NCBI GenBank assembly: GCA_002269645.1
Contig: NIVC01000031.1
Location: forward strand, 372,001 to 436,000
Length of the DNA: 64,000 nt
Direction of reading: 5' to 3'
From: Macrostomum lignano
Lineage: Eukaryota
The first letter of the stretch is position 1, and every line of letters starts with the position of its first letter. The notes under the pieces were generated by a model. The model searched no databases and was not told where the DNA came from. It saw nothing but the letters and a program-made list of their open reading frames with translations. A program made the position numbers and the translations under genes. This document shows positions 1,481 through 60,100 of the stretch, in pieces.

Positions 1481-2281
1481 TTGATTGTTCACTGTCAACT
1501 GCAATTGAGGCGAATGGCAGCTGCCTCATCAGCAGACAGTGAATGCACAGGAAACTCCAACATCGCAGCCAACTATTTGCTTGAAATGTTAAAACAATTT
1601 CGCCTAGCAAATCCCAGGTCAACAAGTGAAGAATTTATTTTGCATATTCGTGACCAGCTAGGCAGAGTGAATTTTGGTAACTGCTACACAGCTGAAGGTT
1701 GGAGGCAGTTGATGCGGCTGGAATCAACTGTTCTATTAGATTTCTTCGCTTCTGTGCACCCTGATTTCAGAGATTATCAACTCGATATGCTGCTAGAACA
1801 GTGGCATCGGCTGACTGTAGAGGCTGGCTCAGACTGGAATCCGAGTATTTTGTCTCAGTTTGTTGATAATTTGAACTCGTATTTTGTTCGACACGACAAT
1901 TATAAATGTCGACAGGAAATCACTGAGCAGGATGTGCTGTTTCTTTACAGACGATTCGGTATTGTACCCAGTAGACAGAGATTTCGTGCAGCCATCAAAT
2001 TAATGATCACTTGCATCGAATGGGTTAGTGTAACTTTTGACATGTTGTTTTCAAGATTTTCGTCATTAGGCCCCATGCTTCACGCCAATTTATGCCGGCT
2101 GTGTTTCCATAATTCGTCCGGTTTGCTATTGGAACTAACAACCGTTTGTCCACTAACCCAGCAGACAGTTCAACATGATATGGTATTGTGCGCCGAGTGT
2201 TCCAGCTTTGTCAGGCACAGGCTGTTGTGTTGTCCATGTTGCTTTCGAAGAATATCCAAGGCCAAGCAAAGAAACTTGTAG
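1481..2281 (+). CDS. Intronless orphan ORF (266 aa in the track; likely ATG at 1514) with a C-terminal Cys cluster (CxxC...CPLT...CAEC...CCPCC), putative Zn-binding
   Basis: 800-nt open frame in AT-rich flanks, non-repetitive protein-like composition, clustered Cys/His at the C-terminus; no family recognised. Confidence 0.5.
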   Translation: MIVHCQLQLRRMAAASSADSECTGNSNIAANYLLEMLKQFRLANPRSTSEEFILHIRDQLGRVNFGNCYTAEGWRQLMRLESTVLLDFFASVHPDFRDYQLDMLLEQWHRLTVEAGSDWNPSILSQFVDNLNSYFVRHDNYKCRQEITEQDVLFLYRRFGIVPSRQRFRAAIKLMITCIEWVSVTFDMLFSRFSSLGPMLHANLCRLCFHNSSGLLLELTTVCPLTQQTVQHDMVLCAECSSFVRHRLLCCPCCFRRISKAKQRNL

Positions 2282-16215: not shown

Positions 16216-24146
<7,931 letters not shown>

Positions 24147-24993
24147 GCCTGCTTGGGCCAACGAGTCAGGACCTGTAGAGCATGGGAAGAGAGTGAACTG
24201 GAGTGGTTGTATGGGATAAAAAGCAGTGAGGATAAGACGAAAACGGGGTTTTTATAACCAATTTTCAGCAGCCAATAGGAAAGCGTCATGGAACTGTTTT
24301 TTCAGCGAACTGGATCACAAAGATGGGAAAACTATAGACATCCTATAGCCAATCCGTCTGCATTTTCATGTGTTGGTTAACATGTGGTTGGTAAGCAAAA
24401 CTCCAGCCAAAATTAGAATATTTATTATCTTTGTTCAACTTGTACTGTAGATGAATCTCAAACAAAGAACAAAACTGCTTCACTTTTGACGAGAATATCT
24501 TGCACTAAAACTGCTGAAACTAGTCATGAAGGTAAATTTTTTGACAAAACATGCAGTCAAGTTAGAATGAGCAAAGTGGCTTGGGAAACAGGAAAAACAA
24601 ATCAATACATGTATATTGAACTTACTCGCTGACAGGTGGACTTCAGACTTCGATTCACTTCGCGAAATCGTTGAGAAAAACTTTAGAACCACTTCAAAAA
24701 AGGCAAAAAAGCAGAAAATTCCAGACAGAGAGAGTCCTCCCGAGCACTCAGGAGGGGCACGCATACAATTTCGAAGTGGGCAATACTCCACGCAACAGAT
24801 TGCCTTAAGCGTTTGCTTAGTTTTAAAACAGAATGGACAGAGACTTAAAATAGAAAATGGGTTTTACAAAGAGCTTCATTCTTCATTGACTCTCTCGTCG
24901 GCTCAAAATCGTATGGATAGATAGATATGAAATAAAAAGGATGCAAACTGGTGTGAGATCCACTGTTATGAGTACACGTCATATCAATAACTC

Positions 24994-25024
<31 letters not shown>

Positions 25025-25032
<8 letters not shown>

Positions 25033-28000
25033 TAGATAGCGAGAAAGAGCGAGCGAAGCGAGCTCTTTCGAGCTTGCTTGCCGCAGCCAATCAAGCTGAA
25101 AGCACGCACACAAGATCACCGGAAACGATTAAGGCAGCTGGAAAGCCAATGGGCGCGGTAAGCGCTTTTATCCAGAGGAACTACCTGCTGGAACCAGCCA
25201 TGCCGAACGAAAATCAGACTACTCAAGTAGTGCAAAAGAGTACGTGCAACTACCGAGAAATCTAATTTTCGTAACCGCTCCGGTGCAGGTCCTGGCTATA
25301 GATAGTAGATAGCGAGAAAGAGCGAGCGAAGCGAGCTCTTTCGAGCTTGCTTGCCGCAGCCAATCAAGCTGAAAGCACGCACACAAGATCACCGGAAACG
25401 ATTAAGGCAGCTGGAAAGCCAATGGGCGCGGTAAGCGCTTTTATCCAGAGGAACTACCTGCTGGAACCAGCCATGCCGAACGAAAATCAGACTACTCAAG
25501 TAGTGCAAAAGAGTACGTGCAACTACCGAGAAATCTAATTTTCGTAACCGCTCCGGTGCAGGTCCTGGCTATAGATAGTAGATAGCGAGAAAGAGCGAGC
25601 GAAGCGAGCTCTTTCGAGCTTGCTTGCCGCAGCCAATCAAGCTGAAAGCACGCACACAAGATCACCGGAAACGATTAAGGCAGCTGGAAAGCCAATGGGC
25701 GCGGTAAGCGCTTTTATCCAGAGGAACTACCTGCTGGAACCAGCCATGCCGAACGAAAATCAGACTACTCAAGTAGTGCAAAAGAGTACGTGCAACTACC
25801 GAGAAATCTAATTTTCGTAACCGCTCCGGTGCAGGTCCTGGCTATAGATAGTAGATAGCGAGAAAGAGCGAGCGAAGCGAGCTCTTTCGAGCTTGCTTGC
25901 CGCAGCCAATCAAGCTGAAAGCACGCACACAAGATCACCGGAAACGATTAAGGCAGCTGGAAAGCCAATGGGCGCGGTAAGCGCTTTTATCCAGAGGAAC
26001 TACCTGCTGGAACCAGCCATGCCGAACGAAAATCAGACTACTCAAGTAGTGCAAAAGAGTACGTGCAACTACCGAGAAATCTAATTTTCGTAACCGCTCC
26101 GGTGCAGGTCCTGGCTATAGATAGTAGATAGCGAGAAAGAGCGAGCGAAGCGAGCTCTTTCGAGCTTGCTTGCCGCAGCCAATCAAGCTGAAAGCACGCA
26201 CACAAGATCACCGGAAACGATTAAGGCAGCTGGAAAGCCAATGGGCGCGGTAAGCGCTTTTATCCAGAGGAACTACCTGCTGGAACCAGCCATGCCGAAC
26301 GAAAATCAGACTACTCAAGTAGTGCAAAAGAGTACGTGCAACTACCGAGAAATCTAATTTTCGTAACCGCTCCGGTGCAGGTCCTGGCTATAGATAGTAG
26401 ATAGCGAGAAAGAGCGAGCGAAGCGAGCTCTTTCGAGCTTGCTTGCCGCAGCCAATCAAGCTGAAAGCACGCACACAAGATCACCGGAAACGATTAAGGC
26501 AGCTGGAAAGCCAATGGGCGCGGTAAGCGCTTTTATCCAGAGGAACTACCTGCTGGAACCAGCCATGCCGAACGAAAATCAGACTACTCAAGTAGTGCAA
26601 AAGAGTACGTGCAACTACCGAGAAATCTAATTTTCGTAACCGCTCCGGTGCAGGTCCTGGCTATAGATAGTAGATAGCGAGAAAGAGCGAGCGAAGCGAG
26701 CTCTTTCGAGCTTGCTTGCCGCAGCCAATCAAGCTGAAAGCACGCACACAAGATCACCGGAAACGATTAAGGCAGCTGGAAAGCCAATGGGCGCGGTAAG
26801 CGCTTTTATCCAGAGGAACTACCTGCTGGAACCAGCCATGCCGAACGAAAATCAGACTACTCAAGTAGTGCAAAAGAGTACGTGCAACTACCGAGAAATC
26901 TAATTTTCGTAACCGCTCCGGTGCAGGTCCTGGCTATAGATAGTAGATAGCGAGAAAGAGCGAGCGAAGCGAGCTCTTTCGAGCTTGCTTGCCGCAGCCA
27001 ATCAAGCTGAAAGCACGCACACAAGATCACCGGAAACGATTAAGGCAGCTGGAAAGCCAATGGGCGCGGTAAGCGCTTTTATCCAGAGGAACTACCTGCT
27101 GGAACCAGCCATGCCGAACGAAAATCAGACTACTCAAGTAGTGCAAAAGAGTACGTGCAACTACCGAGAAATCTAATTTTCGTAACCGCTCCGGTGCAGG
27201 TCCTGGCTATAGATAGTAGATAGCGAGAAAGAGCGAGCGAAGCGAGCTCTTTCGAGCTTGCTTGCCGCAGCCAATCAAGCTGAAAGCACGCACACAAGAT
27301 CACCGGAAACGATTAAGGCAGCTGGAAAGCCAATGGGCGCGGTAAGCGCTTTTATCCAGAGGAACTACCTGCTGGAACCAGCCATGCCGAACGAAAATCA
27401 GACTACTCAAGTAGTGCAAAAGAGTACGTGCAACTACCGAGAAATCTAATTTTCGTAACCGCTCCGGTGCAGGTCCTGGCTATAGATAGTAGATAGCGAG
27501 AAAGAGCGAGCGAAGCGAGCTCTTTCGAGCTTGCTTGCCGCAGCCAATCAAGCTGAAAGCACGCACACAAGATCACCGGAAACGATTAAGGCAGCTGGAA
27601 AGCCAATGGGCGCGGTAAGCGCTTTTATCCAGAGGAACTACCTGCTGGAACCAGCCATGCCGAACGAAAATCAGACTACTCAAGTAGTGCAAAAGAGTAC
27701 GTGCAACTACCGAGAAATCTAATTTTCGTAACCGCTCCGGTGCAGGTCCTGGCTATAGATAGTAGATAGCGAGAAAGAGCGAGCGAAGCGAGCTCTTTCG
27801 AGCTTGCTTGCCGCAGCCAATCAAGCTGAAAGCACGCACACAAGATCACCGGAAACGATTAAGGCAGCTGGAAAGCCAATGGGCGCGGTAAGCGCTTTTA
27901 TCCAGAGGAACTACCTGCTGGAACCAGCCATGCCGAACGAAAATCAGACTACTCAAGTAGTGCAAAAGAGTACGTGCAACTACCGAGAAATCTAATTTTC

Positions 28001-28439
28001 GTAACCGCTCCGGTGCAGGTCCTGGCTATAGATAGTAGATAGCGAGAAAGAGCGAGCGAAGCGAGCTCTTTCGAGCTTGCTTGCCGCAGCCAATCAAGCT
28101 GAAAGCACGCACACAAGATCACCGGAAACGATTAAGGCAGCTGGAAAGCCAATGGGCGCGGTAAGCGCTTTTATCCAGAGGAACTACCTGCTGGAACCAG
28201 CCATGCCGAACGAAAATCAGACTACTCAAGTAGTGCAAAAGAGTACGTGCAACTACCGAGAAATCTAATTTTCGTAACCGCTCCGGTGCAGGTCCTGGCT
28301 ATAGATAGTAGATAGCGAGAAAGAGCGAGCGAAGCGAGCTCTTTCGAGCTTGCTTGCCGCAGCCAATCAAGCTGAAAGCACGCACACAAGATCACCGGAA
28401 ACGATTAAGGCAGCTGGAAAGCCAATGGGCGCGGTAAGC
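25025..28439. repeat. Tandem array of 12 full and one partial (139 bp) apparently identical 273-bp units
   Basis: Identical 63-aa ORFs spaced exactly 273 bp (25074...28077); I saw no unit differences by eye; flanked by a duplicated segment at 24961 and 28461. Confidence 0.98.
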
Positions 28440-28493: not shown

Positions 28494-29716
<1,223 letters not shown>

Positions 29717-39452: not shown

Positions 39453-42400
39453 TTAATAGCCAAGAGCCGTCAGTTCCTCGCCAATTCGCGTCAGATATGT
39501 CGGGTCAGGATAGCCATGCCTGCGGAAAATATCGAATTCAGGGTGTCAAAATTAAAATAAAAAACTAGCTGATGCTTGCAAGTAATTTAACAACCAATAT
39601 AGAAGTGTAGGGGCGCCAGCTACAGAGAGGGGCGCCAGCTACAGAGAGGGGCGCCAGCTACAGAGGGGGGCCCCAGCTACATAGAGGGGCGCCAGCTACA
39701 GAGGGGGGCGCCAGCTACAGAGAGGGGCGCCAGCTACAGAGAGGGGCGCCAGCTACAGAGAGGGGCGTCAGCTACAGAGGGGGGGGGCGCCAGCTACAGA
39801 GAGGGGCGTCAGCTACAGAGGGGGCACCAGCTACAGATGGGGCGCCAGCTACAGAGAGGGGCGCCAGCTACAGAGAGGGGCGTCAGCTACAGAGGGGGGG
39901 GGCGCCAGCTACAGATGGGGCGCCAGCTACAGAGAGGGGCGCCAGCTACAGAGGGGGGGGCGCCAGCTACAGAAGGGGCGCCAGCTACAGAGGGGGGGGG
40001 CGCCAGCTACAGAGGGGGGCGCCAGCTACAGAGGGGGCACCAGCTACAGATGGGGCGCCAGCTACAGAGGGGGGGGGCGCCAGCTACAGAGGGGGCACCA
40101 GCTACAGATGGGGCGCCAGCTACAGAGGGGGGGGGCGCCAGCTACAGAGGGGGCACCAGCTACAGATGGGGCGCCAGCTACAGAGGGGGACGCAAGCTAC
40201 AGAGAGGGGCGCCAGCTACAGAGGGGGCGCCAGCTACAGAGGGGGCGCGAGCTACAGAGGGGGCGCCAGCTACAGAGGGGCGCCAGCTACAGAGGGGCGC
40301 CAGCTACAGAGGGGGCGCCAGCTACAGAGGGGGCGCCAGCTACAGAGGGGGCGCCAGCTATAGAGGGGGCGCCAGCTATAGAGGGGGCACCAGCTACAGA
40401 GAGGGCGCCAGCTACAGAGGGGGCGCCAGCTACAGAGGGGGCACCAGCTACAGAGGGGGCGCCAGCTACAGATGGGGCGCCAGCTACAGAGGGGGGCGCA
40501 AGCTATAGAGGGGCGCCAGCTACAGAGAGGGCGCCAGCTACAGAGGGGGCGCCAGCTACAGAGGGGGCACCAGCTACAGAGGGGGCGCCAGCTACAGAGG
40601 GGGCGCCAGCTATAGAGGGGGCGCCAGCTATAGAGGGGGCACCAGCTACAGAGAGGGCGCCAGCTACAGAGGGGGCGCCAGCTACAGAGGGGGCACCAGC
40701 TACAGAGGGGGCGCCAGCTATAGAGGGGGCGCCAGCTACAGAGGGGGGCGCCAGCTACAGAGGGGGCGCCAGCTACAGAGGGGCGCCAGCTACAGAGGGG
40801 GCGCCAGCTACAGATGGGGCGCCAGCTACAGAGGGGGGCGCCAGCTACAGAGGGGGCGCCAGCTACAGAGGGGCGCCAGCTACAGAGGGGGCGCCAGCTA
40901 CAGAGGGGGCGCCAGCTACAGAGGGGGGGCGCCAGCTACAGAGGGGGGCGCCAGCTACAGAGGGGGCGCCAGCTACAGAGGGGGGGGGCGCCAGCTACAG
41001 AGGGGGGCGTCAGCTTACCCTTCAGGTCCTCCATCGATGCGAGTCTTGTGATGCACAGTGGCCCACGTGATAGTATTATCCATGCCAGTAGTCGCACTGG
41101 TGCCAATAGTAAACACCGCCCGACCACGAAAGGCTGCTTGAAGTCGTTCAACAATCGCCCGACCTTCTGGCGAGTCGGGAAAATAAGTGACTCGAGATAC
41201 GCCTCGATATGGCAGGCCGGGATTCGGGTGCTCGCGTCCTTGAACACCCGGACCGAAAGTGTACGTGACTACTTGAGTTGCGTATCCGGGATGACCAGGC
41301 AGACTCAAGGCCTCTTTGGTGACTGTCATGGTTCCATTGGCTGGCTGACTGCCAACTGCTGCTCTGTATCTGTGTTTAGGTCAAGTGGCGTTGTCTAATA
41401 TTCAATAAAGGAATTTAGAATATGTTTAAATCCAAATCAAATTTAAGTAGGCTAAAATACCACTAAAATGAAGCAAATTTGTACTTTTAGACTCTAGGCT
41501 GAACTGCCAAGAAATACTCTGGTAGAAAACAAACTTTACAATCGATAAATTACAAGATGAGCACCGCATCTGAAGGCTGCGTACGGCTGTTCAGGCCAAG
41601 GTCTGGGGGTCGCCACACACCCTCAATTACCCCAGCTAATGCTGGCACCCATTTTACAGCTGGGTGAACTGAAGCAATGCAGAGTTGAGTGTCTTGCTTA
41701 AGGACACAAATTTTTTTTCCGACTTGGTCGAGAATCGAACCACCGACCTTTCAGTGGTAAGTCCAACGCTCGAACCACTATGCTACAAGCCCTTTGATAC
41801 TATACTTACAGTAGGACTAGTAGAATATTACACGTCTACAATAATATAATGCACGTTTATTTGATACTCTACTGATAGTAGAAATATAGGCAAATTACGA
41901 TAATAATTCAGAATAACAGTGTATTAACAATGTAACAATCATGGTACCTGTGCATGCACAGCGGGCACAGTCCATTGCCAGGCGCAGTCGGGTCGTTCAG
42001 TTTGCGCACGCACGTGACGCACAATTGGCCACGATTGCAATGAAAAGCGGCAGCAGGTTTGGCCATAGACAGCGGCTCGCAGCACAGTTCGCAGTCTGCG
42101 CCAAATTCCTCATCATCCGCGTGTAAAGAAACCGCCGCCGCTGCTGCTGCTGTATTGTTAGGACGCGACGCGAACTCGCGACCTTCTACCAAAAGATTCC
42201 GCGACGGCGGCGGCAGCACTCTGGGCAGTTGAGCGCCAAATCTGGCCTCTAAAACTCGACCGAGAGTGGCCAGAGTCTCCAAGCCTAGATCACAGATGCA
42301 CAATCGGCGAAGGTCGCCGGTTCGATTCCTGCTGCCGGCAGAATGAAACGCTTCGGCCAGTACGTGAGCAAAATCTTCGGACCGATCTGTCCAATAGGGC

Positions 42401-45400
42401 AAACTGGCTCCGATCGGTGTCATTCCAACCACTTGAATGCCGAGTTCAGTTGAGAGCTGAGAAAGAGTGCTCAGCAGAGCATTTATAACATCTTTCATAA
42501 CTTCTTTGAACGCATTGTGATCAATAGTCTGCTCCAGTCGACTATCGTTTGGTAGCGCTAGGAACAGGATGTGACGAGCTGGCAGCTGCGAGCCCGGAGG
42601 CAAGGTCACAAGCCGAGTATCGCCGAACTTCAAGTTCTGACCTTGAAGCGCCTCCCGACACAGGCGCAGCAACTTCTGCTGACCCGACTGCGGGGTGGGG
42701 GAGCGGCACTCAACTATGTTTGAGACCCGTAGCTCCAATCTCACCCATAGATAATCGAGTGTCTATGAGACCCGTAGCTCCAATCTCACCTATAGATAAT
42801 CGAGTGTCTATGAGACCCGTAGCTCCAATCTCACCCCTAGATAATCGAGTGTCTATGAGACCCGTAGCTCCAATCTCACCCCTAGATAATCGAGTGTCTA
42901 TGAGACCCGTAGCTCCAATCTCACCTATAGATAATCGAGTGTCTATGAGACCCGTAGCTCCAATCTCACCCCTAGATAATCGAGTGTCTATGAGACCCGT
43001 AACTCCAATCTCACCTATAGATAATCGAGTGTCTATGAGACCCGTAGCTCCAATCTCACCCCTAGATAATCGAGTGTCTATGAGACCCGTAGCTCCAATC
43101 TCACCTATAGATAATCGAGTGTCTATGAGACCCGTAGCTCCAATCTCACCTATAGATAATCGAGTGTCTATGAGACCCGTAGCTCCAATCTCACCTATAG
43201 ATAATCGAGTGTCTATGAGACCCGTAGCTCCAATCTCACCTATAGATAATCGAGTGTCTATGAGACCCGTAGCTCCAATCTCACCTATAGATAATCGAGT
43301 GTCTATGAGACCCGTAGCTCCAATCTCACCCCTAGATAATCGAGTGTCTATGAGACCCGTAGCTCCAATCTCACCCCTAGATAATCGAGTGTCTATGAGA
43401 CCCGTAGCTCCAATCTCACCTATAGATAATCGAGTGTCTATGAGACCCGTAGCTCCAATCTCACCTATAGATAATCGAGTGTCTATGAGACCCATAGCTC
43501 CAATCTCACCTATAGATAATCGAGTGTCTATGAGACCCGTAACTCCAATCTCACCCATAGATAATCGAGTGTCTATGAGACCCGTAGCTCCAATCTCACC
43601 TATAGATAATCGAGTGTCTATGAGACCCGTAACTCCAATCTCACCTATAGATAATCGAGTGTCTATGAGACCCGTAGCTCCAATCTCACCTATAGATAAT
43701 CGAGTGTCTATGAGACCCGTAGCTCCAATCTCACCTATAGATAATCGAGTGTCTATGAGACCCGTAGCTCCAATCTCACCTATAGATAATCGAGTGTCTA
43801 TGAGACCCGTAGCTCCAATCTCACCTATAGATAATCGAGTGTCTATGAGACCCGTAGCTCCAATCTCACCCCTAGATAATCGAGTGTCTATGAGACCCGT
43901 AGCTCCAATCTCACCTATAGATAATCGAGTGTCTATGAGACCCGTAGCTCCAATCTCACCCCTAGATAATCGAGTGTCTGAAAGACCCACAGCTCCAATC
44001 TCACCTATAGATAATCGAGTGTCTATGAGACCCGTAACTCCAATCTCACCTATAGATAATCGAGTGTCTATGAGACCCGCAACTCCAATCTCACCCATAG
44101 ATAATCGAGTGTCTATGAGACCCGTAGCTCCAATCTCACCTATAGATAATCGAGTGTCTATGAGACCCGTAGCTCCAATCTCACCTATAGATAATCGAGT
44201 GTCTATGAGACCCGTAGCTCCAATCTCACCTATAGATAATCGAGTGTCTATGAGACCCGTAACTCCAATCTCACCCCTAGATAATCGAGTGTCTATGAGA
44301 CCCGTAGCTCCAATCTCACCCCTAGATAATCGAGTGTCTATGAGACCCGTAGCTCCAATCTCACCTATAGATAATCGAGTGTCTATGAGACCCGTAGCTC
44401 CAATCTCACCCCTAGATAATCGAGTGTCTATGAGACCCGTAACTCCAATCTCACCTATAGATAATCGAGTGTCTATGAGACCCGTAGCTCCAATCTCACC
44501 CCTAGATAATCGAGTGTCTATGAGACCCGTAGCTCCAATCTCACCTATAGATAATCGAGTGTCTATGAGACCCGTAGCTCCAATCTCACCCCTAGATAAT
44601 CGAGTGTCTATGAGACCCGTAGCTCCAATCTCACCTATAAATAATCGAGTGTCTATGAGACCCGTAGCTCCAATCTCACCTAAAGATAATCGAGTGTCTA
44701 TGAGACCCGTAGCTCCAATCTCACCTATAGATAATCGAGTGTCTATGAGACCCGTAGCTCCAATCTCACCTATAGATAATCGAGTGTCTATGAGACCCGT
44801 AGCTCCAATCTCACCTATAGATAATCGAGTGTCTATGAGACCCGTAGCTCCAATCTCACCTATAGATAATCGAGTGTCTATGAGACCCGTAGCTCCAATC
44901 TCACCTATAGATAATCGATCGTGTCTATGAGACCCGTAGCTCCAATCTCACCTATAGATAATCGAGTGTCTATGAGACCCGCAACTCCAATCTCACCCCT
45001 AGATAATCGAGTGTCTATGAGACCCGTAGCTCCAATCTCACCTATAGATAATCGAGTGTCTATGAGACCCGTAGCTCCAATCTCACCCCTAGATAATCGA
45101 GTGTCTATGAGACCCGTAGCTCCAATCTCACCTATAGATAATCGAGTGTCTATGAGACCCGTAGCTCCAATCTCACCTATAGATAATCGAGTGTCTATGA
45201 GACCCGTAGCTCCAATCTCACCCCTAGATAATCGAGTGTCTATGAGACCCGTAGCTCCAATCTCACCTATAGATAATCGAGTGTCTATGAGACCCGTAGC
45301 TCCAATCTCACCTATAGATAATCGAGTGTCTATGAGACCCGTAGCTCCAATCTCACCTATAGATAATCGAGTGTCTATGAGACCCGTAGCTCCAATCTCA

Positions 45401-48090
45401 CCCATAGATAATCGAGTGTCTATGAGACCCGTAACTCCAATCTCACCTATAGATAATCGAGTGTCTATGAGACCCGTAGCTCCAATCTCCCCTATAGATA
45501 ATAATCGAGTGTCTAAGAGACCCGTAGCTCCAATCTCACCTATAGATAATCGAGTGTCTATGAGACCCGCAACTCCAATCTCACCCATAGATAATCGAGT
45601 GTCTATGAGACCCGTAGCTCCAATCTCCCCTATAGATAATAATCGAGTGTCTAAGAGACCCGTAGCTCCAATCTCACCTATAGATAATCGAGTGTCTATG
45701 AGACCCGCAACTCCAATCTCACCCATAGATAATCGAGTGTCTATGAGACCCGCAACTCCAATCTCACCCATAGATAATCGAGTGTCTATGAGACCCGTAG
45801 CTCCAATCTCACCTATAGATAATCGAGTGTCTATGAGACCCGTAGCTCCAATCTCACCTATAGATAATCGAGTGTCTATGAGACCCGTAGCTCCAATCTC
45901 ACCCCTAGATAATCGAGTGTCTATGAGACCCGTAGCTCCAATCTCACCTATAGATAATCGAGTGTCTATGAGACCCGTAGCTCCAATCTCCCCTATAGAT
46001 AATAATCGAGTGTCTAAGAGACCCGTAGCTCCAATCTCACCTATAGATAATCGAGTGTCTAAGAGACCATTTAGAATCTCAAAGATCACAATCGTGATAT
46101 CTCTGCAATTAAAACTCAATAGTTAAGTCCTAATTAATAAAGAAATCAAGCGTTTCACCTTGGCAGCCACAACCCGGGCCAGGCCAAAGTTAAGTGACAG
46201 AGCACAGCTAGTGGTCACAATCAGCGCGTCGCACTGCAAAGTTGTGATATCGCGCGGCTCAACTCGCAGTGAGCATCGATCGTTCAATGCCAGCTCAAAA
46301 TCGTATGGGCCCAGATCGCGAAGGTACTGAGTGTCCACAGGTACAACAGCGCAAGCGCCTTCTACAGCTGGGACATCTGAAATAAGTGAAATATTTTTAT
46401 TTAGGCAACATATTCGAATTGTTTTCAATGTATGCTTTAAAAAACCACAACTAGTAGTTAGTTACCCTGAGAAACTATGTCTGGAAATAGAGGCCTTCTT
46501 GAACGACTAGTAGAGCTGATGACAGAAGAGGCTCGGCTCGCTGTGGATGTTGGCTGCTCAGAGGCCCATTTTCTTAAAGCTGACTGAGCACAGCTCAGCA
46601 CTTCTGGGTGGCAAGCATGAAGCATTGCCAACTTTGGTTCTGTTAACTGCATTTCAACTTGATATTGCTCATCTAGATCAACTTTGATTGGTGCCAGTTC
46701 TTGCTCAGTGAATTTTCTAGGCAGTTTAACCTGGCCAGATGTGGTTGGAGGCAAGTCAGGCTCCTAAAATAGAAGATAATAGAAAACACATTTTTAGACA
46801 TTAGAACAAAATAAGGATATTTAAGGTCATTTTCTTACCTCTTTTCTTTCTACTATTTTTGCTGGCACAGTATTGTTAATTAAAAATTCATCTGATCTTC
46901 TTGAAAATGTAACTAAAATGAAAAATAAGCATATAAATTGAGTCTTAAAAACATAAATTAAATAAAGCCTTATTATTTAAAATTGTTATTTTTTAAAATC
47001 AAGAGATTTATTGGACCTTATAAAATTTATATAATATTATACCAATTCTTTTGAATCAATATATTATCTATAGCTACTCTTTTATCTATAAATACCCTGT
47101 ATTAATTTGTAGCTAGCCCTTATTGTGGATTGTGTTACACATATGCGGGAAAGTATTTGGCTATCTAGTAAGTGTATGCCAGTTAATTACACCAATTGAA
47201 TGTTATAGTAAATTGTATGCCACTAAAATTGCGTAATTATAAAGCATATAACCAATGTAATAAACAATATATGCACAGCAAATAATTGCTGCAAAAAACA
47301 AAACCTATATTACTTAAAAAATGGAAAAAACTAGTAAAAAATAGTTATCTATACTATCGTTTTAGGTACTTTTTTACTAATAACTATAGAAACTTCAAGT
47401 ATATATCTTAAATAAATTAATTTATTATCATAACTTTAAAATTAACTTTATTACAGCAAAGATTGTTTTGCATAATTTAGACAATTATGACATACTTCAA
47501 TGCTTTTGTATGGTGCACCGCAAGCTTGAACATGTATAGTTAAAAGTTGTAAGCCAATGATTGTGCAAGAAGGTTGTATTTCTATTCTATAAAGTGCACA
47601 CCATACCAAGTGTGCATGAACACTATTTTCTTAGTTGTGATGCACGCCAGCTGTGCACGCCTACTTTTTGCGTGCAAGGCCAATGCACGCCCAAATTTTC
47701 GAGCGTATACCACATGATCCAGACTCTGGAGTGTGAGCTCCTATCTAGCTAGCCTACTAACTTAACTTAGCCCTTCTATTTTTTTGTAATTGTAGGTTGT
47801 AGCTAGCATCACAAGTCAGTAGTAGTACTACTTCATTGCATTCTTACTTAAAGTTTGCAAAAATGATGTCACCATAGCACTGAGGAATAGTGTTAATATT
47901 AACAGAATTACTTACCTTTGTTCTTGAAATACAATTTTGCCAATGTGTGGTCCCCATTGAAAGGCTTGACAACACACAAAAATTCTTCCGAAAAAAGATC
48001 TGAGAAGTACGAATGCACAAGTTCCCAACTGACTTCATTTGGGTTCGAGTGTCGTGAAGATTTAGGAATTGAAATAGTTAAGGTAAACAT
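39453..48090 (-). CDS. DTX3L: Deltex/DTX3L-like E3 ubiquitin ligase with an internal macrodomain (~640 aa); exons 48090-47916, 46912-46839, 46763-46466, 46376-46159, 42687-41948, 41369-41019, 39519-39453
   Basis: All six GT-AG introns are phase-consistent (1923 nt); Deltex C-terminal motifs SQPANGTM, FTIGTSATTG, VHHKTRIDGGPEGHGYPDPTYL; RING-like CELC...CVTC...CPLC; macro motifs RDITTLQCDALIV, GLARVVAAK, ILFLALP, PIGASL. Exact orthology not established. Confidence 0.85.
39608..41012. repeat. ~18-19-bp G-rich minisatellite (gggggcgccagctacaga) filling the last Deltex intron
   Basis: Direct. Confidence 0.97.
41570..41792 (-). mobile_element. tRNA-derived SINE, copy 2 (in a Deltex intron)
   Basis: Minus strand: GGGCTTGTAGCATAGTGG (A box) ... 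GGTTCGATTCTCG (B box); body matches 34272-34495. Confidence 0.85.
42717..46070. repeat. 45-bp minisatellite (gtgtctatgagacccgtagctccaatctcacctatagataatcga), ~74 copies, filling a Deltex intron
   Basis: Direct; the 15-aa period in the ORF track equals 45 nt. Confidence 0.98.
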
Positions 48091-51142: not shown

Positions 51143-54100
51143 ATGGCAGACTTTTCATCCCTGCTGACAGAAATTGACCACTACCTTGGTTGTAGTGGTA
51201 AGCAGCAAGACAGTGGCGCCAGCAACAATGAGCTGGTGCTGTCCCATCGAATTGATGTAAGTCTTTGTTTACTAGACCCAATTGTCTCCTCAATTGCATT
51301 TGCCAAATGTCAACTGATATGCCTCTTAGATATGAATCCCTAGATCCCATTTCTTTTTGCAAATCTTATTCCCACATCCTAGTCTGTTCCCAGACCCCAT
51401 TCTCTCATTTTCTTCCCAGATCCCATTCTCTTCCTAGATCCCATTCTTTTCCCAGATCCCATTCCCTTCTTCCCTTGGCACTTGTATAGCTTATATTGAT
51501 TGATATATTGATCTATATTTATTGAATTCCATAACAATTTACAGCATTTCTTGGGTCTGCACCCGTCACAACTGGAGCTGGAATCCGACGTGACTCGTGA
51601 TTGCCTGGAAGCGCTGCTGGAATTGCTTGTTACCGGGCGTAGTGGAGTGTCTCATTCTGTTCGGCGCAGATGCGTAAAGCTACTGACCCACCTGGGTGAG
51701 TTCATTTCAGTTACGTTAGATAAAACTTACGTGTTTCTATTTAAGATTACTAAGATTATAATTGGGATTTCGGATTCAAATAGTTATCTATATGATATTA
51801 TTAAAGGGATTTATTATAAGATTTTAACTGAAATTTATGAGATTCTAATTCAAGAGATTTTTATGAGATTCTAATTCGAATTTATAGATTCTAATTGGGA
51901 TTTTTATGAAATTATAATTGGGCTTTTTTGAGATTCTAATTCGGATTTATGAAATTCTAATTGGTAGTTTAATGAGATTCTAATTCGGATTTATGAAATT
52001 CTAATTCGCATTTATGAGATTCTAATTGAGATTTGAGTTTCTAATTGGGATTCATGGAATTCTAATAGGGATTCATGAGATCATGCTAATTGAGATTTTT
52101 GAGTTTCTAATTGGTATTTATGCGATTCTAATTTAGTTATTTGAGATTCTGATTGAAATTTCTGTGAATATAATAGGGATTTATGAAATTTTAATAGGGA
52201 TTTATGAGATTCGAAAAGAGATTTATGATAACAGACATTTATTGCCCATTCCTCATAAATTTTCAGCAAGCAGTCGAGCGTGGCAGGAGACGCTGCTGGA
52301 ATCGCACAGCTGCTTAGATCGTCTGCCAGTGTTCTTTCACCAGCGTCCATCGCATCCGTTGCTGACTGACGGCCTGTGCTTGCTGCAGGCGCTCTGCTTT
52401 GATTATCATTTTGGCGCTTGGACTGACGGTGACAGGGCTGCGGCAGTTGCCTCCGTGGTTTCCGTGCTGCTGTTCTATCTCAGGTAGGCTTGTAATATAG
52501 CTTCAGGGAGGGGTGGGTAGCCTAAAAACTTCAGGGAGGGGTTTGTAGTATGATAAAACAGCAAAGTGGGGTTTTGTAGCCTGATAAAACTTCAGGTAGG
52601 GGTTTGTAGCCTGATAAAACTTCAGAGAATGGTTATTAGCCTGATAAAACTTCAGGGAGGGGTTAGTAGCTTGATAAAACTTCAGGGAGGAATTAGTAGC
52701 TTGATAAAACTTCAGGGAGGGGTTAGTAGCCTGATAAAACTTCAGAGAATAGTTATTAGCCTGATAAAAATTCAGGGAGGGGTTAGTAGCCTGATAAAAC
52801 TTCAGGGAGGGATTAGTAGCCTGATAAAACTTCAGGGAGGGGTTAGTAGCCTGATAAAACTTCAGAGAATAGTTATTAGCCTGATAAAACTTCAGAGAAT
52901 AGTTATTAGCCTGATAAAACTTCAGAGAATAGTTATTAGCCGGATAAAACTTCAGGGAGGGGTTAGTAGCTTGATAAAACTTCAGAGAATAGTTATTAGC
53001 TTGATAAAACTTCAGGTAGGGGTTTGTAGCCTGATAAAACTTCAAAGAATAGTTATTAGCTTGATAAAACTTCAGGTAGGGGTTTGTAGCCTGATAAAAC
53101 TTCAGAGAATAGTTATTAGCCTGATAAAACTTCAGGGAGGGGTTAGTAGCTTGATAAAACTTCAGAGAATAGTTATTAGCCTGATAAAACTTCAGGGAGG
53201 GGTTAGTAGCTTGATAAAACTTCAGAGAATAGCTATTAGCCTGATAAAACTTCAGGGAGGGGTTAGTAGCTTGATAAAACTTCAGAGAATAGTTATTAGC
53301 TTGATAAAACTTCAGGGAGGGGTTAGTAGCTTGATAAAACTTCAGAGAATAGTTATTAGCCTGATAAAACTTCAGGGAGGGGTTAGTAGCCTGATAAAAC
53401 TTCAGAGAATAGTTATTAGCCTGATAAAACTTCAGGGAGGGGTTAGTAGCTTGATAAAACTTCAGAGAATAGTTATTAGCTTGATAAAACTTCAGGGAGG
53501 GGTTAGTAGCTTGATAAAACTTCAGAGAATAGTTATTAGCCTGATAAAACTTCAGAGAATAGTTATTAGCTTGATAAAACTTCAGGTAGGGGTTTGTAGC
53601 CTGATAAAACTTCAAAGAATAGTTATTAGCTTGATAAAACTTCAGGTAGGGGTTTGTAGCCTGATAAAACTTCAGGGAGGGGTTAGTAGCTTGATAAAAC
53701 TTCAGGGAGGGATTAGTAGCCTGATAAAACTTCAGGGAGGGGTTAGTAGTCTAAGAAAGCTTCAGGGAGGGTTCGTAATTTAGTAAAACTTAAAGGATGA
53801 AAGTTTAGTAATCCACATGATTCAAGAAGGGCTTGATATCACAAATTATTATAAACAGTTTTGTAAAATACCCTAATTAAAGCTATTTTCAGGGTTTAAC
53901 AAACATAATATGCTTAAAAATTACACCGACTAATTACTGAATCTATTAATTAAGTAGTGAATTCAGGGCATGTGGTGAACAGAAATCATAGACCTTTATT
54001 TTTTTATGATTTTAACTTCCCCAGAAACGACTCGGACATGGCAATCTACGAACCATCGCTTGGCATTCTCGCTTCCCTGCTTCGCGGCAATACCGACTGC

Positions 54101-57100
54101 CAGAATTTGGTTCGCAATTCTGACAAGTTTCACTGGCTAAAAAAGCAGCTATTGAAAAATTTGGAGAATCCGTCATTAAGCATTACTATTTATTCAATGT
54201 CGCTAATCTACTATCTTGGTGGGTGTGGTGAACAGCTGTTTAACTGTCCAACCAATTCCTATCAGAGCATTCAAGCTGTGTTTCATGTACTACTGACTGG
54301 CAGTTGCAATAGTAGATGGGCGCCATTGTATTCCGCTAATTTGCTTATTGATATTGCCACTTCTGGCTTCAATCAGGACTTGTTGCCTACTTATGAGTAT
54401 TTGCCAGTCTGCTTGGGACCGCTGTTGGATCAGCTGACAGCGGAGAAGCTGCTTCAAGGCAAAGTGAGTGAAATGTTTGTCCCTGTGTCGTCTGACATCC
54501 AGTTGCCTCTACACACATATCCTTGTCTCTTCTTAACTCCCATTCTCCCAGATCCCATTCTCAATTCCCAGACCCCATTCTCTTCCCAGAACCCATTACC
54601 TTCTCAGATCCCCTTACCTTCTCAGATCCCCTTACCTTCCCAGATCCCATTATCTTCCTAGATTCCATTCTCTTCCCAAATCCCATTCTATCTCTCTTCC
54701 CAAATCCCATTCTATCTCTTCCTAGATCCCAATATTTTCCCAGATCCCATTCTCTTCCCGAATCCCATTCTCTTCCCAAATCCCATTCTCTTCCCGAATC
54801 CCATTCTCTTCCCGAATCCCATTCTCTTCCCAAATCCCATTCTCTTCCCAAATCCCATTCTCTTCCCAAATCCCATTCTCTTCCCAAATCCCATTCTCTT
54901 CCCAAATCCCATTCTCTTCCCGAATCCCATTCTCTTCCCTAATCCCATTCTCTTCCCAAATCCCATTCTCTTCCCGAATCCCATTCTCTTCCCAAACCCC
55001 ATTCTCTTCCCGAATCCCATTCTCTTCCCAAATCCCATTCTCTTCCCAAATCCCATTCTCTTCCCAAATCCCATTCTCTTCCCGAATCCCATTCTCTTCC
55101 CAAACCCCATTCTCTTCCCGAATCCCATTCTCTTTCCAAATCCCATTCTCTTCCCAAATCCCATTCTCTTCCCGAATCCCATTCTCTTCCCAAACCCCAT
55201 TCTCTTCCCAAATCCCATTCTCTTCCCAAATCCCATTCTCTTCCCAAATCCCATTCTCTTCCCGAATCCCATTCTCTTCCCGAATCCCATTCTCTTCCCG
55301 AATCCCATTCTCTTCCCAAACCCCATTCTCTTCCCGAATCCCATTCTCTTTCCAAATCCCATTCTCTTCCCAAATCCCATTCTCTTCCCAAATCCCATTC
55401 TCTTCCCAGATCCCATTATCTTCCCAGATCCTATTCGCTTCCCAAATCCCATTCTCTTCCCAAATCCCATTCTCTTCCTAAGTCTTGATTTCCTAGATCC
55501 CTTAACTGCTTTATCCTTTGTTAATACACCCAGTTTCTAAACTCTCAGTAGAATTTGATACCGCTATAATTCTTTCCCATTTGACCAGATCCTGGAAGTA
55601 CTTCATGTACTATGCAACCACGAGCGCAGTCGCAAGTTAGTATTCGATCAGATCCTATTAAACTCAGCACTGCAAAGCGACACCACTGATGCTAAATTAA
55701 AGAATAGCAATTTAGCTTTCGTAGCCATTCTGTCTGCCGCTCAAGACTCCTGCGATTCCGCTGTGAAAGCTGTCCGTCTGTTAACTGATCTATATAAGCA
55801 TTATGTGGATTCCCAGTGCCAGTCTAAGCACAGACTCGAACTAGTGCTCAACTATCTGTTGCCACAGCTTAGCGTGGACAGTCTGCAGTTTAATCAGCAC
55901 GTTACAGAAGCTTTCGAACGTAATGTTGTTCGACTGGGCGCTTATTGCAAACTGCTGGGCTGTAAGAATGCTTTTTCAAGTGTCAATTCTCCCAGATCCC
56001 CATTAGCTACCCCAATCTCCCAGATCCCCATTAGCTACAGTTCTCCCAGATCCCCATTAGCTACGTACAGTTCTCCCATATCCCCATTAGCTACAGTTCT
56101 CCCAGATCCCCATTAGCTACTGTTCTCCCAGATCCCCATTAGCTACAGTTCTCCCAGATCCCCATTAGCTACAATTCTCCCAGATCCCCACTAGCTACAA
56201 TTCTTCTAGATCCCCATTAACTACAAGTGTCCCAGATCCCCATGAGTTACAATTCTCCCAGATCCCTATGAGTTACAATTCTCCCAGATCCCCATGAGTT
56301 ACAATTCTCCCAGATCCCTATTAGCTACGATCTCCCATATCCCTATTAGCTACAATTCTCCCAGATCCCCATGAGTTACAATTCTCCCAGATCCCTATTA
56401 GCTACGATCTCCCATATCCCTATTAGCTACAATTCTCCCAGATTCCCATGAGTTACAATTCTCCCAGATCCCTATGAGTTACAATTCTCCCAGATCCCCA
56501 TGAGTTACAATTCTCCCAGATCCCTATTAGCTACGATCTCCCATATCCCTATTAGCTACAATTCTTTCAGATTCCCATGAGCTACAATCTCCTAGATCCC
56601 TATTAGCTACAATTCTCCCAGATCCCCATTAGCTACAATTCTCCCAGATCCCCATTAGCTACAATTCTCCCAGATCACCATTAGCTACAATTCTCCCAGA
56701 TACCCATTAGCTACAGTTCTCCCAGATCCCCATTAGCTACAATTCTCCCAGATCCCCACTAGCTACAATTCTTCTAGATCCCCATTAACTACAAGTGTCC
56801 CAGATCCCCATGAGTTACAATTCTCCCAGATCCCTATGAGTTACAATTCTCCCAGATCCCCATGAGTTACAATTCTCCCAGATCCCTATTAGCTACGATC
56901 TCCCATATCCCTATTAGCTACAATTCTTTCAGATTCCCATGAGCTACAATCTCCTAGATCCCTATTAGCTACAATTCTCCCAGATACCCATTAGCTACAA
57001 TTCTCCCAGATCCCCATTAGCTACAATTCTCCCAGATCCCCATTAGCTACAATTCTCCCAGATACCCATTAGCTACAATTCTCCCAGATCCCCATTAGCT

Positions 57101-60100
57101 ACAATTCTCCCAGATCCCCATTAGCTACAGTTCTCCCAGATCCCCATTAGCTACAATTCTCCCAGATCCCCATTAGCTACAATTCTCCCAGATCCCCACT
57201 AGCTACAATTCTTCTAGATCCCCATTAACTACAAGTGTCCCAGATCCCCATGAGTTACAATTCTCCCAGATCCCCATGAGTTACAATTCTCCCAGATCCC
57301 CATTAGCTACAGTTCTCCCAGATCCCCATTAGCTACAATTCTCCCAGATCCCCATTAGCTACAACTCTCCCAGATCCTCACTAGCTACAATTCTCCCAGA
57401 TCCCCATTAGCTAGCATTCTCCCAGAATCCCCATTAGCTAGCATTCTCCCAGAATCCCCATTAGCTAGCATTCTCCCAGATCCCCATTAGCTAGCATTCT
57501 CCCAGATCCCCATTAGCTAGCATTCTCCCAGAATCCCAGATCGCCATTATCGTGCAATTCCGCAGACCTGTGCAACCAGCCGCAATGGTGCGATCTGATT
57601 GGTCGCCAACTGGTAACTGAACGCTGCCTCGACCTACTTGATTGGCTAGCGAGCAAGTGCTGCTATGTGGGACGATCGCAAGATTATCGCAGGCGCTCTT
57701 GGATCTACTTTGGCCAAGTGTGCAGCATCCGTTTGCTGTGGCTATTGTGCCGGATTAGCAATTTTGGCGTCAATAGTAACAAGCCTTTAGCCAATCAGAT
57801 TGAAGCTAGACTTTCTACTGATACTACTGAGACTAGTAGTAACGGCGAACATCCAAAGCAATCTTCAACATCGTGTTCCCTGGCTCGTCTACTAGCTTGC
57901 GGTCTCGTCTATCATTGCTATTCTGGGGGACCATATAGCAATGCCAGCATTGGTGGCTCTGGCGCAGCCGTGTCCGACTATTGCGGGGATCAGATTGTGG
58001 AATGTGCCCTTCGTATAGTGTGCCTGGCTGGGCAGAAGCTTATACCCAGGTGAGTAGTATGAACTGTGTTTGTATATCATTTCAATTTTAGGTGTCATTT
58101 GGGTGTTTGGGATCAAAGTGTCGCCGACTGAGGGATTAGGGATTGTGTTTGGGATCAAACATCGAAGTGTCGCCGACTGAGGGATTAGGGATTTTGTTTG
58201 GGATCAAAGTGTCACCGACTGAGGCAATATGGATTTTGTTTGGGATCAAAGTGTCACCGACTGAGGCAATAGGAATTTTGTTTGGGATCAAAATGTCGCC
58301 GACTGAGGCAATAGGGATTTTGTTTGGGATCAAAGTGTCACCGACTGAGACAATAGGGATTTTGTTTGGGATCAAAATGTCGCCGACTGAGGCATTAGGG
58401 ATTTTGTTTGGGATCAAAGTGTCGCCGACTGAGGGATTAGGGATCATTGTGTTTGGGATTAAAGTGTCACTGATTGAGTAGGGATCAAGAGGAATCGAAT
58501 AAAAATGTAACTTAATTGATAGATTAGAATTTCAGAAGGGTCTGTGGTACAGAATGTTCAGCAGTGTCACCTTTATAGTCTTTGTTTCCACTGTCTTGGT
58601 TTTTGCAGCGTTTCCCGCGAACTGGCCTCACTATTGTCTCAGCGTCATCGCTTGGCTTTAGCCTCAACCAATAATGGTATCGCTAGAGGCCCTTCAGCGT
58701 TGCCTAGTAACGGTTGCTATGCGGGTAGCATCGGTCTCGGCGTTGAACTGATGAACGGCCACGGTGTCGCGGTTGGTTCGACAACTTCAACGTCTGCATC
58801 TGCCGGCAGCAGCGGTGGCGGCGGCGGTGCAGTCAACGGTGGACACGAGCTGGGCAGCGGTCAGCTGGATCAGCTGATTAACGATGTTAAAAACAGGCTG
58901 AATGTGAGTGCTTTATCTAATCTGTTTCTTTTTCATTGCAACTTAGGTATGTGCTCAGGGGTCAGTGAAATGGGACGAATTGCCTCAAGTAGTGACCCTG
59001 GGCGACTCTTTTATCTTTTTAACGACTCATTAGACTGTAATGCAACGGAAAGGCGACTGTTGAGTCTCGTGAGTTGCAAAACCGTATAATAGTCGTCTCT
59101 GAGTGACCACCCTGAGTCTCTGAGTGACCACCCTGAGTCTCTTCAGTGACCACTCTGAGTCTCTTGAGTGACCACCCTGAGTCTCTTGAGTGACCACCCT
59201 GAGTCTCTTCAGTGACCACTCTGAGTCTCTTGAGTGACCACTCTGAGTCTCTTCAGTGACCACTCTGAGTCTCTTGAGTGACCACCCTGAGTCTCTTGAG
59301 TGACCACTCTGAGTCTCTTGAGTGACCACTCTGAGTCTCTTCAGTGACCACTCTGAGTCTCTTGAGTGACCACCCTGAGTCTCTTGAGTGACCACCCTGA
59401 GTCTCTTCAGTGACCACTCTGAGTCTCTTGAGTGACCACTCTGAGTCTCTTCAGTGACCACTCTGAGTCTCTTGAGTGACCACCCTGAGTCTCTTGAGTG
59501 ACCACCCTGAGTCTCTTGAGTGACCACCCTGAGTCTCTTGAGTGACCACCCTGAGCCTCTTGAGTGACCACCCTGAGTCTTCAGTGACCACTCTGAGTCT
59601 CTTCAGTGACCACTCTGAGTCTCTTCAGTGACCACTCTGAGTCTCTGAGTGACCACCCTGAGTCTCTGAGTGACCACCCTGAGTCTCTGAGTGACCACCC
59701 TGAGTCTCTTGAGTGACTACCCTGAGTCTCTTCAGTGACCACTCTGAGTCTCTGAGTGACCACCCTGAGTCTCTGAGTGACCACCCTGAGTCTCTGAGTG
59801 ACCACCCTGAGTCTCTGAGTGACCACCCTGAGTCTCTTGAGTGACCACCCTGAGTCTCTGAGTGACCACCCTGAGTCTTGAGTGACCACCCTGAGTCCTC
59901 AGTAAGCATCCTGACTGCTTTCATCTGTACCAGCTAGTTTCGGGACATTGTCGCCGAAGACTCTTGAAATTATTAATGGTACTATAAGGACGCCAGCATT
60001 TCATTTGCATTCATAACCACCCCCTCCCTCTAACAAAAACTTTTGCACAGCTGAAGGACACTCGAGTCTCAGACCTGCTCACACTGTACGAATCCAAGCT

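Follow-up and report, generated by a model that had tools for sequence, protein, structure and literature searches.

A DTX3L-type Deltex ligase of Macrostomum lignano with a divergent macrodomain on the RING–DTC chain

Introduction

Human DTX3L is a ubiquitin ligase in which a RING is followed by a Deltex C-terminal (DTC) domain, and it is paired with macrodomains of the PARP14/PARP9 clade. In tetrapods these macrodomains sit on a separate chain, PARP9, whose gene lies head-to-head with that of DTX3L, and DTX3L itself has KH-like domains. A preprint that surveyed Deltex genes across 126 metazoans reports that the macrodomain of DTX3L was lost as PARP9 emerged and traces the full RRM plus KH-like layout of DTX3L back only to amphibians (10.64898/2026.04.23.720386). 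Here we analyse a stretch of 64,000 nucleotides (nt) of the flatworm Macrostomum lignano (GenBank assembly GCA_002269645.1, contig NIVC01000031.1, positions 372,001 to 436,000), hereafter the window and numbered from its first letter, which contains the gene BOX15_Mlig007561g1. The gene encodes a DTX3L-type Deltex E3 ubiquitin ligase that carries an RRM-like N-terminus, a macrodomain, a linker, a RING and a DTC domain on one chain.

Like the human DTX3L–PARP9 pair, the flatworm protein combines a RING–DTC ligase with a macrodomain of the PARP14/PARP9 clade, has equivalents of the catalytic His707 and Glu733 of DTX3L, and possibly shares an N-terminal RRM. Unlike the tetrapod pair, it has the macrodomain in cis and no KH-like similarity. 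As in the DTX3L group of lineages without PARP9 (10.64898/2026.04.23.720386), a macrodomain is present; here it follows the N-terminal region and precedes the RING. DTX1, DTX2 and DTX4 have N-terminal WWE domains instead of a macrodomain, and their RINGs have a canonical His ligand; the RING–DTC of DTX2 and DTX1 (PDB 6y22, 6y3j and 6y5n) shares 36% identity with that of the flatworm protein, in which the ADP-ribose-contacting His residues and the catalytic Glu are conserved. An original prediction, made from the letters of the window alone, had proposed this single-chain architecture and compared it with a vertebrate DTX3L that lacks a macrodomain and works as a heterodimer with macrodomain-bearing PARP9, a description that agrees with the literature.

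Gene structure

Exons were reconstructed from open reading frames (ORFs) and splice signals on the minus strand, from 48090 to 39453. Joined, they give a coding sequence (CDS) of 1923 nt, which encodes 640 amino acids (aa) and ends in a TAA stop. There are seven exons, every intron is GT..AG, and the phases are compatible. The exons and two large introns, in the direction of transcription, are as follows.

Exon 1, 47916..48090, minus strand: aa 1-58 plus 1 base; ATG at 48090; start of the N-terminal beta-alpha-beta, RRM-like region
Exon 2, 46839..46912, minus strand: aa 59-83; end of the RRM-like region
Exon 3, 46466..46763, minus strand: aa 84-182; no recognisable domain, and a Ser/Thr-rich linker
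Exon 4, 46159..46376, minus strand: aa 183-255; N-terminal part of the macrodomain (aa ~214-255); acceptor tttcag/AT, donor AAG/GTGAAA
Intron 4, 42688..46158, minus strand: 3471 bp; splits the macrodomain at aa 255/256
Exon 5, 41948..42687, minus strand: aa 256-501; C-terminal part of the macrodomain (256-406), low-complexity linker (407-453) and RING-like finger
Exon 6, 41019..41369, minus strand: aa 502-618; most of the DTC, including the catalytic His608 (VHHKT)
Intron 6, 39520..41018, minus strand: 1499 bp
Exon 7, 39453..39519, minus strand: aa 619-640 plus TAA; end of the DTC, with GHGYPDP (His620) and GEEL (catalytic Glu634); acceptor ttccgcag/G

The seven phase-consistent exons of the original prediction, with their coordinates and the junctions 46159/42687 and 41948/41369, proved exact when rebuilt in this way. 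The peptides it had quoted (RDITTLQCDALIV..., GLARVVAAK/SGQQKLLRLC and PIGASL) are present in the product, and the intron between exons 4 and 5 does split the macrodomain. The ATG of exon 1 is the first after an in-frame stop, and the exon ends at the donor AAAG/GTAAGT; the N-terminus that it encodes is also present in the GenBank protein PAA84524.1 (BOX15_Mlig007561g3; P0001 in our numbering of proteins) and in the paralogue P0007. Among the AG..GT candidates with phase 1-to-0, exon 2 is the one that agrees with P0001.

The product is identical to PAA84524.1 at 626/640 positions in a gap-free alignment, and its aa 75-640 match exactly, as a substring, the partial protein PAA93249.1 (BOX15_Mlig007561g1; P0131), so the window holds the g1 copy. 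On this sequence match, which is far beyond chance, the locus is the annotated M. lignano gene BOX15_Mlig007561g1. The gene models that GenBank gives for the assembly come from RNA-seq data assembled into transcriptomes, both de novo and with the genome as guide (PMC5730564), and the deposited CDS joining the macrodomain, RING and DTC exons is therefore transcript-based. The databases label the protein only as "hypothetical protein / E3 ubiquitin-protein ligase", with the DTC alone as a domain.

All seven exons align ungapped with those of the g3 copy (locus L002), at 95-100% identity. By the Nei-Gojobori method the two copies differ by 30 synonymous and 14 non-synonymous changes, and this estimate, based on only 44 substitutions, gives 0.065 synonymous (dS) and 0.0098 non-synonymous (dN) changes per site and a dN/dS of 0.15; the macro region alone gives 0.13. 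The numbers are small, yet consistent with purifying selection on both copies.

These data bear on the possibility that the architecture is an artefact of the gene model, with the macro and RING–DTC exons belonging to different transcripts, or that the locus is a decaying duplicate. The parts are separated by two large tandem-repeat introns (3.5 and 1.5 kb), and many near-identical duplicates occur in the genome (PMC5730564). Moreover, the UniProt entry A0A1I8GDN0 (P0002) represents the same locus spliced differently: it omits 34 macrodomain residues (aa 256-289) and reads past the exon-6 donor into intron 6, with the DTC end GHGYPDP...ELxALGY replaced by unrelated sequence. In all likelihood the entry is mis-predicted. 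One uninterrupted exon (exon 5) holds both the RING and the C-terminal half of the macrodomain, which excludes a simple two-gene artefact for those parts. In addition, every junction is GT-AG and keeps the phase, the exons are joined in the transcript-derived GenBank CDS, the ORF is intact in two copies with the dN/dS of 0.15, and the same domain order is found in the intronless gene P0003 and in five groups of animals. We consider an artefact extremely improbable; the gene is intact, transcribed and selectively constrained.

Exon 6 has two in-phase AG acceptors 6 nt apart, at 41369 and 41363 (cacag/ATACAG/AGC). The GenBank models use 41369 (…CMHRYRAAVG…), whereas the UniProt entries P0002 and P0133 use the downstream acceptor 41363 and have two residues fewer (Arg-Tyr in the window sequence; P0133, a g3-type sequence, is without Tyr-Arg). 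The difference may reflect alternative splicing or model noise.

Outside the window, M. lignano has a paralogue of the gene (P0007/P0137; Mlig011245 and Mlig011146) with 37% identity and the same RRM-like N-terminus, macrodomain, RING variant and DTC. P0007 had been considered as an orthologue from another species, which was rejected: it is a paralogue within M. lignano. The macrodomain of the paralogue is likewise invisible to Pfam; of the two Asn in the NAAN motif it has retained the second (VPSN). The paralogue also has long poly-Q/P/A linkers.

Macrodomain

Exon 4 encodes the motifs RDIT (with Asp225), IVTTS and, at the loop-1 position, NFGL. Several lines of evidence place these in a macrodomain: (i) BLASTP of aa 218-405 against the Pfam-positive macrodomain of P0003, which is 663 aa long and shares the overall layout, gave E 3e-7. 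(ii) An exhaustive phmmer search with aa 1-433 against 1.84e9 representative proteins returned only five proteins: besides this locus and its paralogue there were three macro proteins, all of them Pfam Macro-positive (the PARP14-like P0008, with three macrodomains, WWE and a PARP domain, E 1.1e-5; P0009, 1.8e-4; and P0010, 7e-4). (iii) In hhalign, the flatworm macro profile aligned with eight Pfam-positive macrodomains of Macro-RING-DTC proteins at 97.6% probability and E 3.6e-12, over 182 colinear columns. (iv) An AlphaFold2 model of aa 205-640, built from a 124-sequence alignment, has a mean predicted local distance difference test (pLDDT) score of 80.5, with 66-87 in the macrodomain and 86-98 in the RING–DTC. 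Foldseek matched its macrodomain to macroH2A, macrodomain 1 (MD1) of PARP9, MD2 of PARP14 and Af1521, at E 1e-11 to 1e-8 and template modelling (TM) scores of 0.73-0.81, the fold reaching TM 0.81 against PARP9 MD1. A second, shallower model from a 4-sequence alignment gave the same structural matches, and the TM scores of both models together span 0.72-0.81.

Macrodomain homology and a predicted three-layer alpha/beta/alpha fold are thus supported by several lines of sequence and model evidence, despite the failure of Pfam. Among solved structures, the macro family profile built from RING–DTC-fused proteins is closest to PARP14 MD1 (E 1e-44) and PARP9 MD1 (E 1.6e-42), and by sequence the flatworm macrodomain belongs to the PARP14-MD1/PARP9-MD1 clade. 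In a search of the PDB with the macro query, the top match was to a viral phosphoprotein (E 0.018), which we dismissed as chance.

RING–DTC module and N-terminal region

Identification of the DTC is unambiguous on sequence grounds, and its catalytic His and Glu are conserved. Searching the joined 640-aa product with Pfam DTC (PF18102) gave E 2.6e-46 and 157.5 bits (cutoff 25) across profile positions 2-132 of 133. The closest PDB sequences were DTX2, DTX3L and DTX1 (E 4e-39 to 2.5e-31), and in Foldseek the predicted structure superposed on the DTX3L DTC 3pg6 with TM 0.94 and a root-mean-square deviation of about 1 Å. His608, His620 and Glu634 align with H582, H594 and E608 of DTX2, with the spacing His+26=Glu confirmed. 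H582 and E608 of DTX2 (H707 and E733 of DTX3L) form the catalytic pair that activates the 3'-hydroxyl of ADP-ribose, and H594 of DTX2 is a second His in contact with ADP-ribose (PMC10810221).

The finger that precedes the DTC follows the pattern C454-x2-C457-x13-H471-C472-x5-C478-x2-C481-x14-C496-x2-C499, which fills seven of the eight canonical C3HC4 ligand positions (C454, C457, C472, C478, C481, C496 and C499). Alignment with 123 relatives puts Arg474 at the canonical His position (window 42031..42045, aa 470-474, FHCNR), and every Pfam RING model fell below threshold, the best being zf-RING_4 with E 0.012; recruitment of an E2 ubiquitin-conjugating enzyme is therefore something that we only infer. 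The AlphaFold2 model gives the finger a pLDDT of 86-94, and the Foldseek alignments, of about 210 columns, cover the RING–DTC of DTX1/DTX2. His471, directly before Cys472, is kept in the 37%-identical paralogue P0007 (PFHCD), and a sponge relative from Ephydatia muelleri (P0014) has Cys-Cys and Asn at the equivalent positions. The sequence patterns of P0007 and P0014 suggest a recurrent alternative arrangement of RING ligands, and the flatworm finger is probably a variant RING whose zinc site 2 would use the upstream His.

In hhalign, aa 1-95 aligned with tetrapod DTX3L N-termini (PF23222 proteins) at 39.6% probability and E 3e-4 over 70 colinear columns; fish DTX3L N-termini gave no signal, and Pfam found no match in the region. 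For aa 84-215, hhalign against fish and mammal sequences of KH_DTX3L (PF21718) gave a probability of 0.2%, again with no Pfam match, and a KH-like domain was rejected.

The domain calls of the original prediction therefore fared differently. A complete DTC domain and a macro fold on the same chain as it and the RING-like finger were borne out, the latter by phmmer, hhalign and Foldseek rather than by Pfam. The RING-like domain stood as a zinc finger before the DTC, with seven of eight ligands and a confident model, but without the canonical His or a Pfam RING match above threshold. Of the two N-terminal domains seen by eye, the RRM-like one was weakly supported, by the tetrapod but not the fish or Pfam comparisons, and the KH-like one was unsupported.

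Proposed function and the macrodomain pocket

By analogy with the biochemistry of DTX2 and DTX3L (PMC7442474, PMC7500938, PMC10810221), the RING would recruit a ubiquitin-charged E2, the adjacent DTC would bind ADP-ribose attached to a protein or nucleic acid, and His608/Glu634 would promote transfer of ubiquitin to the ADP-ribose 3'-hydroxyl or to nearby lysines. The macrodomain would add a second ADP-ribose-related contact in cis, the role that PARP9 macrodomains play in trans for tetrapod DTX3L. We think that this ADP-ribose-directed role of the macrodomain is reasonably probable.

A number of observations weigh against this reading. Pfam Macro (PF01661) gave no match to aa 218-406 even at E<=10, and the precomputed Pfam annotation of P0001 and P0002 lists no Macro either. 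Flatworm macro profiles built from a single sequence or from three sequences matched macrodomains in the PDB only at non-significant E 0.15-0.8, and the AlphaFold2 alignments included canonical macrodomains, a possible bias toward the macro fold. In the pocket itself, Val236 and Ser239 replace both Asn of the NAAN motif, Phe246-Gly247 stands in place of the loop-1 Gly-Gly, and loop 2 reads PIGASLPYW (aa 346-354), with a 2-residue insertion, where G/S-x-G-[IV]-[FY] is expected and relatives have A-I-S-T-G-I-F-G. To these must be added the RING departures and the small number of substitutions given above, and the fact that transcript support comes via the RNA-seq-derived annotation and not from reads. 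The histidine of VIHxVGP is also Phe here (ILFLALP). With its motifs altered in this way the pocket is, as judged from the sequence, remodelled, and ADP-ribose binding is not assured. Two pocket residues do not vary in any relative: Asp225, at the adenine-contacting position of GDIT, and Gly247, one of the loop-1 glycines.

These changes could mean that the macrodomain is degenerate, keeping its fold as a scaffold or protein-interaction module without binding ADP-ribose, while the DTC does all the recognition and the protein acts as a plain Deltex ligase. MacroH2A1.2 and macroH2A2 are macro folds that do not bind ADP-ribose, and both are among the best structural matches of the flatworm domain. 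The lack of a Pfam Macro match, the substitution of both Asn, of one of the two loop-1 glycines and of the loop-2 glycine, and the 2-residue insertion all point the same way, and macrodomains of PARP14 and of viral proteins have repeatedly lost their activity (PMC10221186). However, Asp225 and Gly247 have not changed in any relative, and some Pfam-positive relatives likewise have a single Gly in loop 1 (HG, RG, SG). Loop 1 (LSLxFGLA) also ranks among the better-conserved parts in the comparison of the M. lignano paralogues (12/22 identical vs 36% overall), and the dN/dS of the macro region is 0.13. A degenerate domain is a possibility to be taken seriously, although on balance we doubt it.

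The pocket may also have been remodelled without being lost, in a single-chain reader-writer that reads another ligand, such as an ADP-ribose–ubiquitin hybrid, nucleic-acid-linked ADP-ribose or another nucleotide. Both paralogues, which are 36% identical, have V/S where the Asn pair would be, a loop 1 with F-G-L and a loop 2 with L-P-x-W plus insertion, and these changes are under purifying selection. We rate such a switch of ligand as rather unlikely. If true, the remodelled pocket, combined with a RING that has an unusual His-Cys ligand pair, would give a specificity absent from vertebrate DTX3L/PARP9.

A further alternative is an eraser, that is, an active mono-ADP-ribosylhydrolase like PARP14 MD1 and PARP9 MD1 that would couple removal of ADP-ribose to ubiquitylation. 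The macro family is closest to these two domains (1e-44 and 1.6e-42), both MacroD-type hydrolases. For hydrolase activity, loop 1 must be flanked by Asn/Ser and Gly, and loop 2 must hold a hydrophobic-aromatic pair (PMC10221186), features that the flatworm domain has only in part. Ser239 stands at the start of loop 1, where Asn or Ser is compatible with activity (PMC10221186), but a single flanking loop-1 glycine is left (Phe246-Gly247), and the hydrophobic-aromatic pair of loop 2 is interrupted (L-P-Y-W plus the insertion). In PARP14 MD1 and PARP9 MD1, both of them active as hydrolases, the motifs of loops 1 and 2 are intact, whereas the flatworm motifs are altered and identity in the Foldseek alignments is only about 15%. 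An active hydrolase is thus highly unlikely, and a second ADP-ribose-directed contact in cis remains the role that we favour for the macrodomain.

Distribution of the architecture

The architecture was surveyed with the macrodomain and RING–DTC of P0003 as the query, with the linker removed; a full-length 4-sequence alignment used as the query had returned only two M. lignano entries, for which its poly-Q/P/A low-complexity words are suspected. Pfam-annotated Macro+DTC proteins occur in five groups (sponge, coral, bivalve, gastropod and amphioxus), represented by the following proteins with macrodomain, RING and DTC.

P0014: sponge, Ephydatia muelleri
P0012: coral, Oculina patagonica
P0016: bivalve, Ruditapes philippinarum
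P0027: gastropod, Babylonia areolata
P0013: amphioxus, Branchiostoma floridae, named "DTX3L-like"

Several transcriptome and metagenome assemblies also hold Macro+DTC proteins. The best full-length match outside Macrostomum is P0003 (E 5e-48), an intronless gene on a metazoan contig in ENA with the same domain order.

The flatworm protein shares the domain order and spacing of the invertebrate Macro-RING-DTC ligases, with macrodomains colinear over about 180 residues and DTC identity of about 50%. Those ligases match Pfam Macro (e.g. 5.8e-28) and C3HC4 RING models, whereas the flatworm protein matches neither. In it, V/S stand where the Asn are expected, FG replaces GG, loop 2 contains an insertion, and Arg takes the place of the RING His. 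Its N-terminal extension of about 200 aa is missing from most of those ligases.

The original prediction had called the protein a fusion and had proposed a survey across Metazoa. The layout, which the survey found in these five groups, is common in invertebrates, and the architecture has already been catalogued and interpreted in the preprint cited above, in which DTX3L loses its macrodomain as PARP9 arises. Given this loss and cis-macro proteins from sponge to amphioxus, the flatworm protein more likely retains an older layout than represents a new fusion, and the term fusion was not upheld. What sets this locus apart, from its sequence, is a macrodomain beyond Pfam detection, which is the one new point, and a RING that is non-canonical.

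Genomic context

Searching the window by tblastn with PARP14-like and macro proteins revealed no PARP gene and no other macro gene elsewhere in it; thus, the head-to-head DTX3L–PARP9 arrangement of tetrapods is absent here. The neighbouring genes and the main tandem arrays are as follows.

16216..24161, minus strand: rhodopsin-family G protein-coupled receptor (7tm_1, E 3.4e-36), downstream of the Deltex gene, split by a long intron with several tandem arrays
25025..28439: tandem array of a 273-bp unit x 12.5, 100% matches, no indels (Tandem Repeats Finder (TRF) score 6830)
39610..41015: array in intron 6, 18-bp G+C-rich unit (GGGGCGCCAGCTACAGAG) x about 76 (TRF score 2091)
42721..46068: array in intron 4, 45-bp unit x about 74, 95% matches (TRF score 6086)
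53957..59089, plus strand: CIP2A-like gene (Pfam CIP2A_N, E 1.3e-9), upstream of and divergent from the Deltex gene

The g3 copy, which is 96-98% identical, has a CIP2A-like neighbour too. Its intron 4 measures 248 bp, against 3471 bp here, which makes the 45-bp array a copy-specific expansion. Intron 6 measures 1155 bp in g3, against 1499 bp in the window, where its array fills nearly the whole intron, ends 3 bp from the exon-6 donor and has a G+C content of 70%, with about 40% on either side. On both strands of the intron 4 array, spurious ORFs reach 793 aa, and the long ORFs that run along either strand at 39.8-41.1 kb and 42.5-46.1 kb were rejected as genes, being translations of tandem arrays.

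Sixteen large tandem arrays (TRF score >=600) together make up about 35% of the 64-kb window, or roughly 22 kb. This is well above the 15% of the M. lignano genome made up of simple and tandem repeats (PMC5730564). The perfect 273-bp units suggest very recent amplification, or collapse or expansion in the assembly; a (TAGA)n array at 28494..29625 flanks them. At 1481..2281 on the plus strand lies an ORF of 266 aa that is rich in Cys at its C-terminus (...CAECSSFVRHRLLCCPCCFRRI); Pfam gave no match to it at E<=0.01, and it may represent one exon of a zinc-finger protein missing from the annotation.

Implications

With the macrodomain in cis to the RING–DTC, the flatworm protein is a natural single-chain counterpart of the vertebrate PARP9–DTX3L pair. 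It lends support to the idea that, before PARP9 existed, a single chain already combined the reading of ADP-ribose with the writing of ADP-ribose/ubiquitin. Because the databases label the protein by its DTC only, counts of macro-bearing Deltex proteins that rely on Pfam architectures will come out too low in fast-evolving lineages, flatworms among them. With transgenesis and a transcript-based annotation available in M. lignano, the gene and its paralogue offer a simple system in which to learn what a macrodomain adds to a Deltex ligase.

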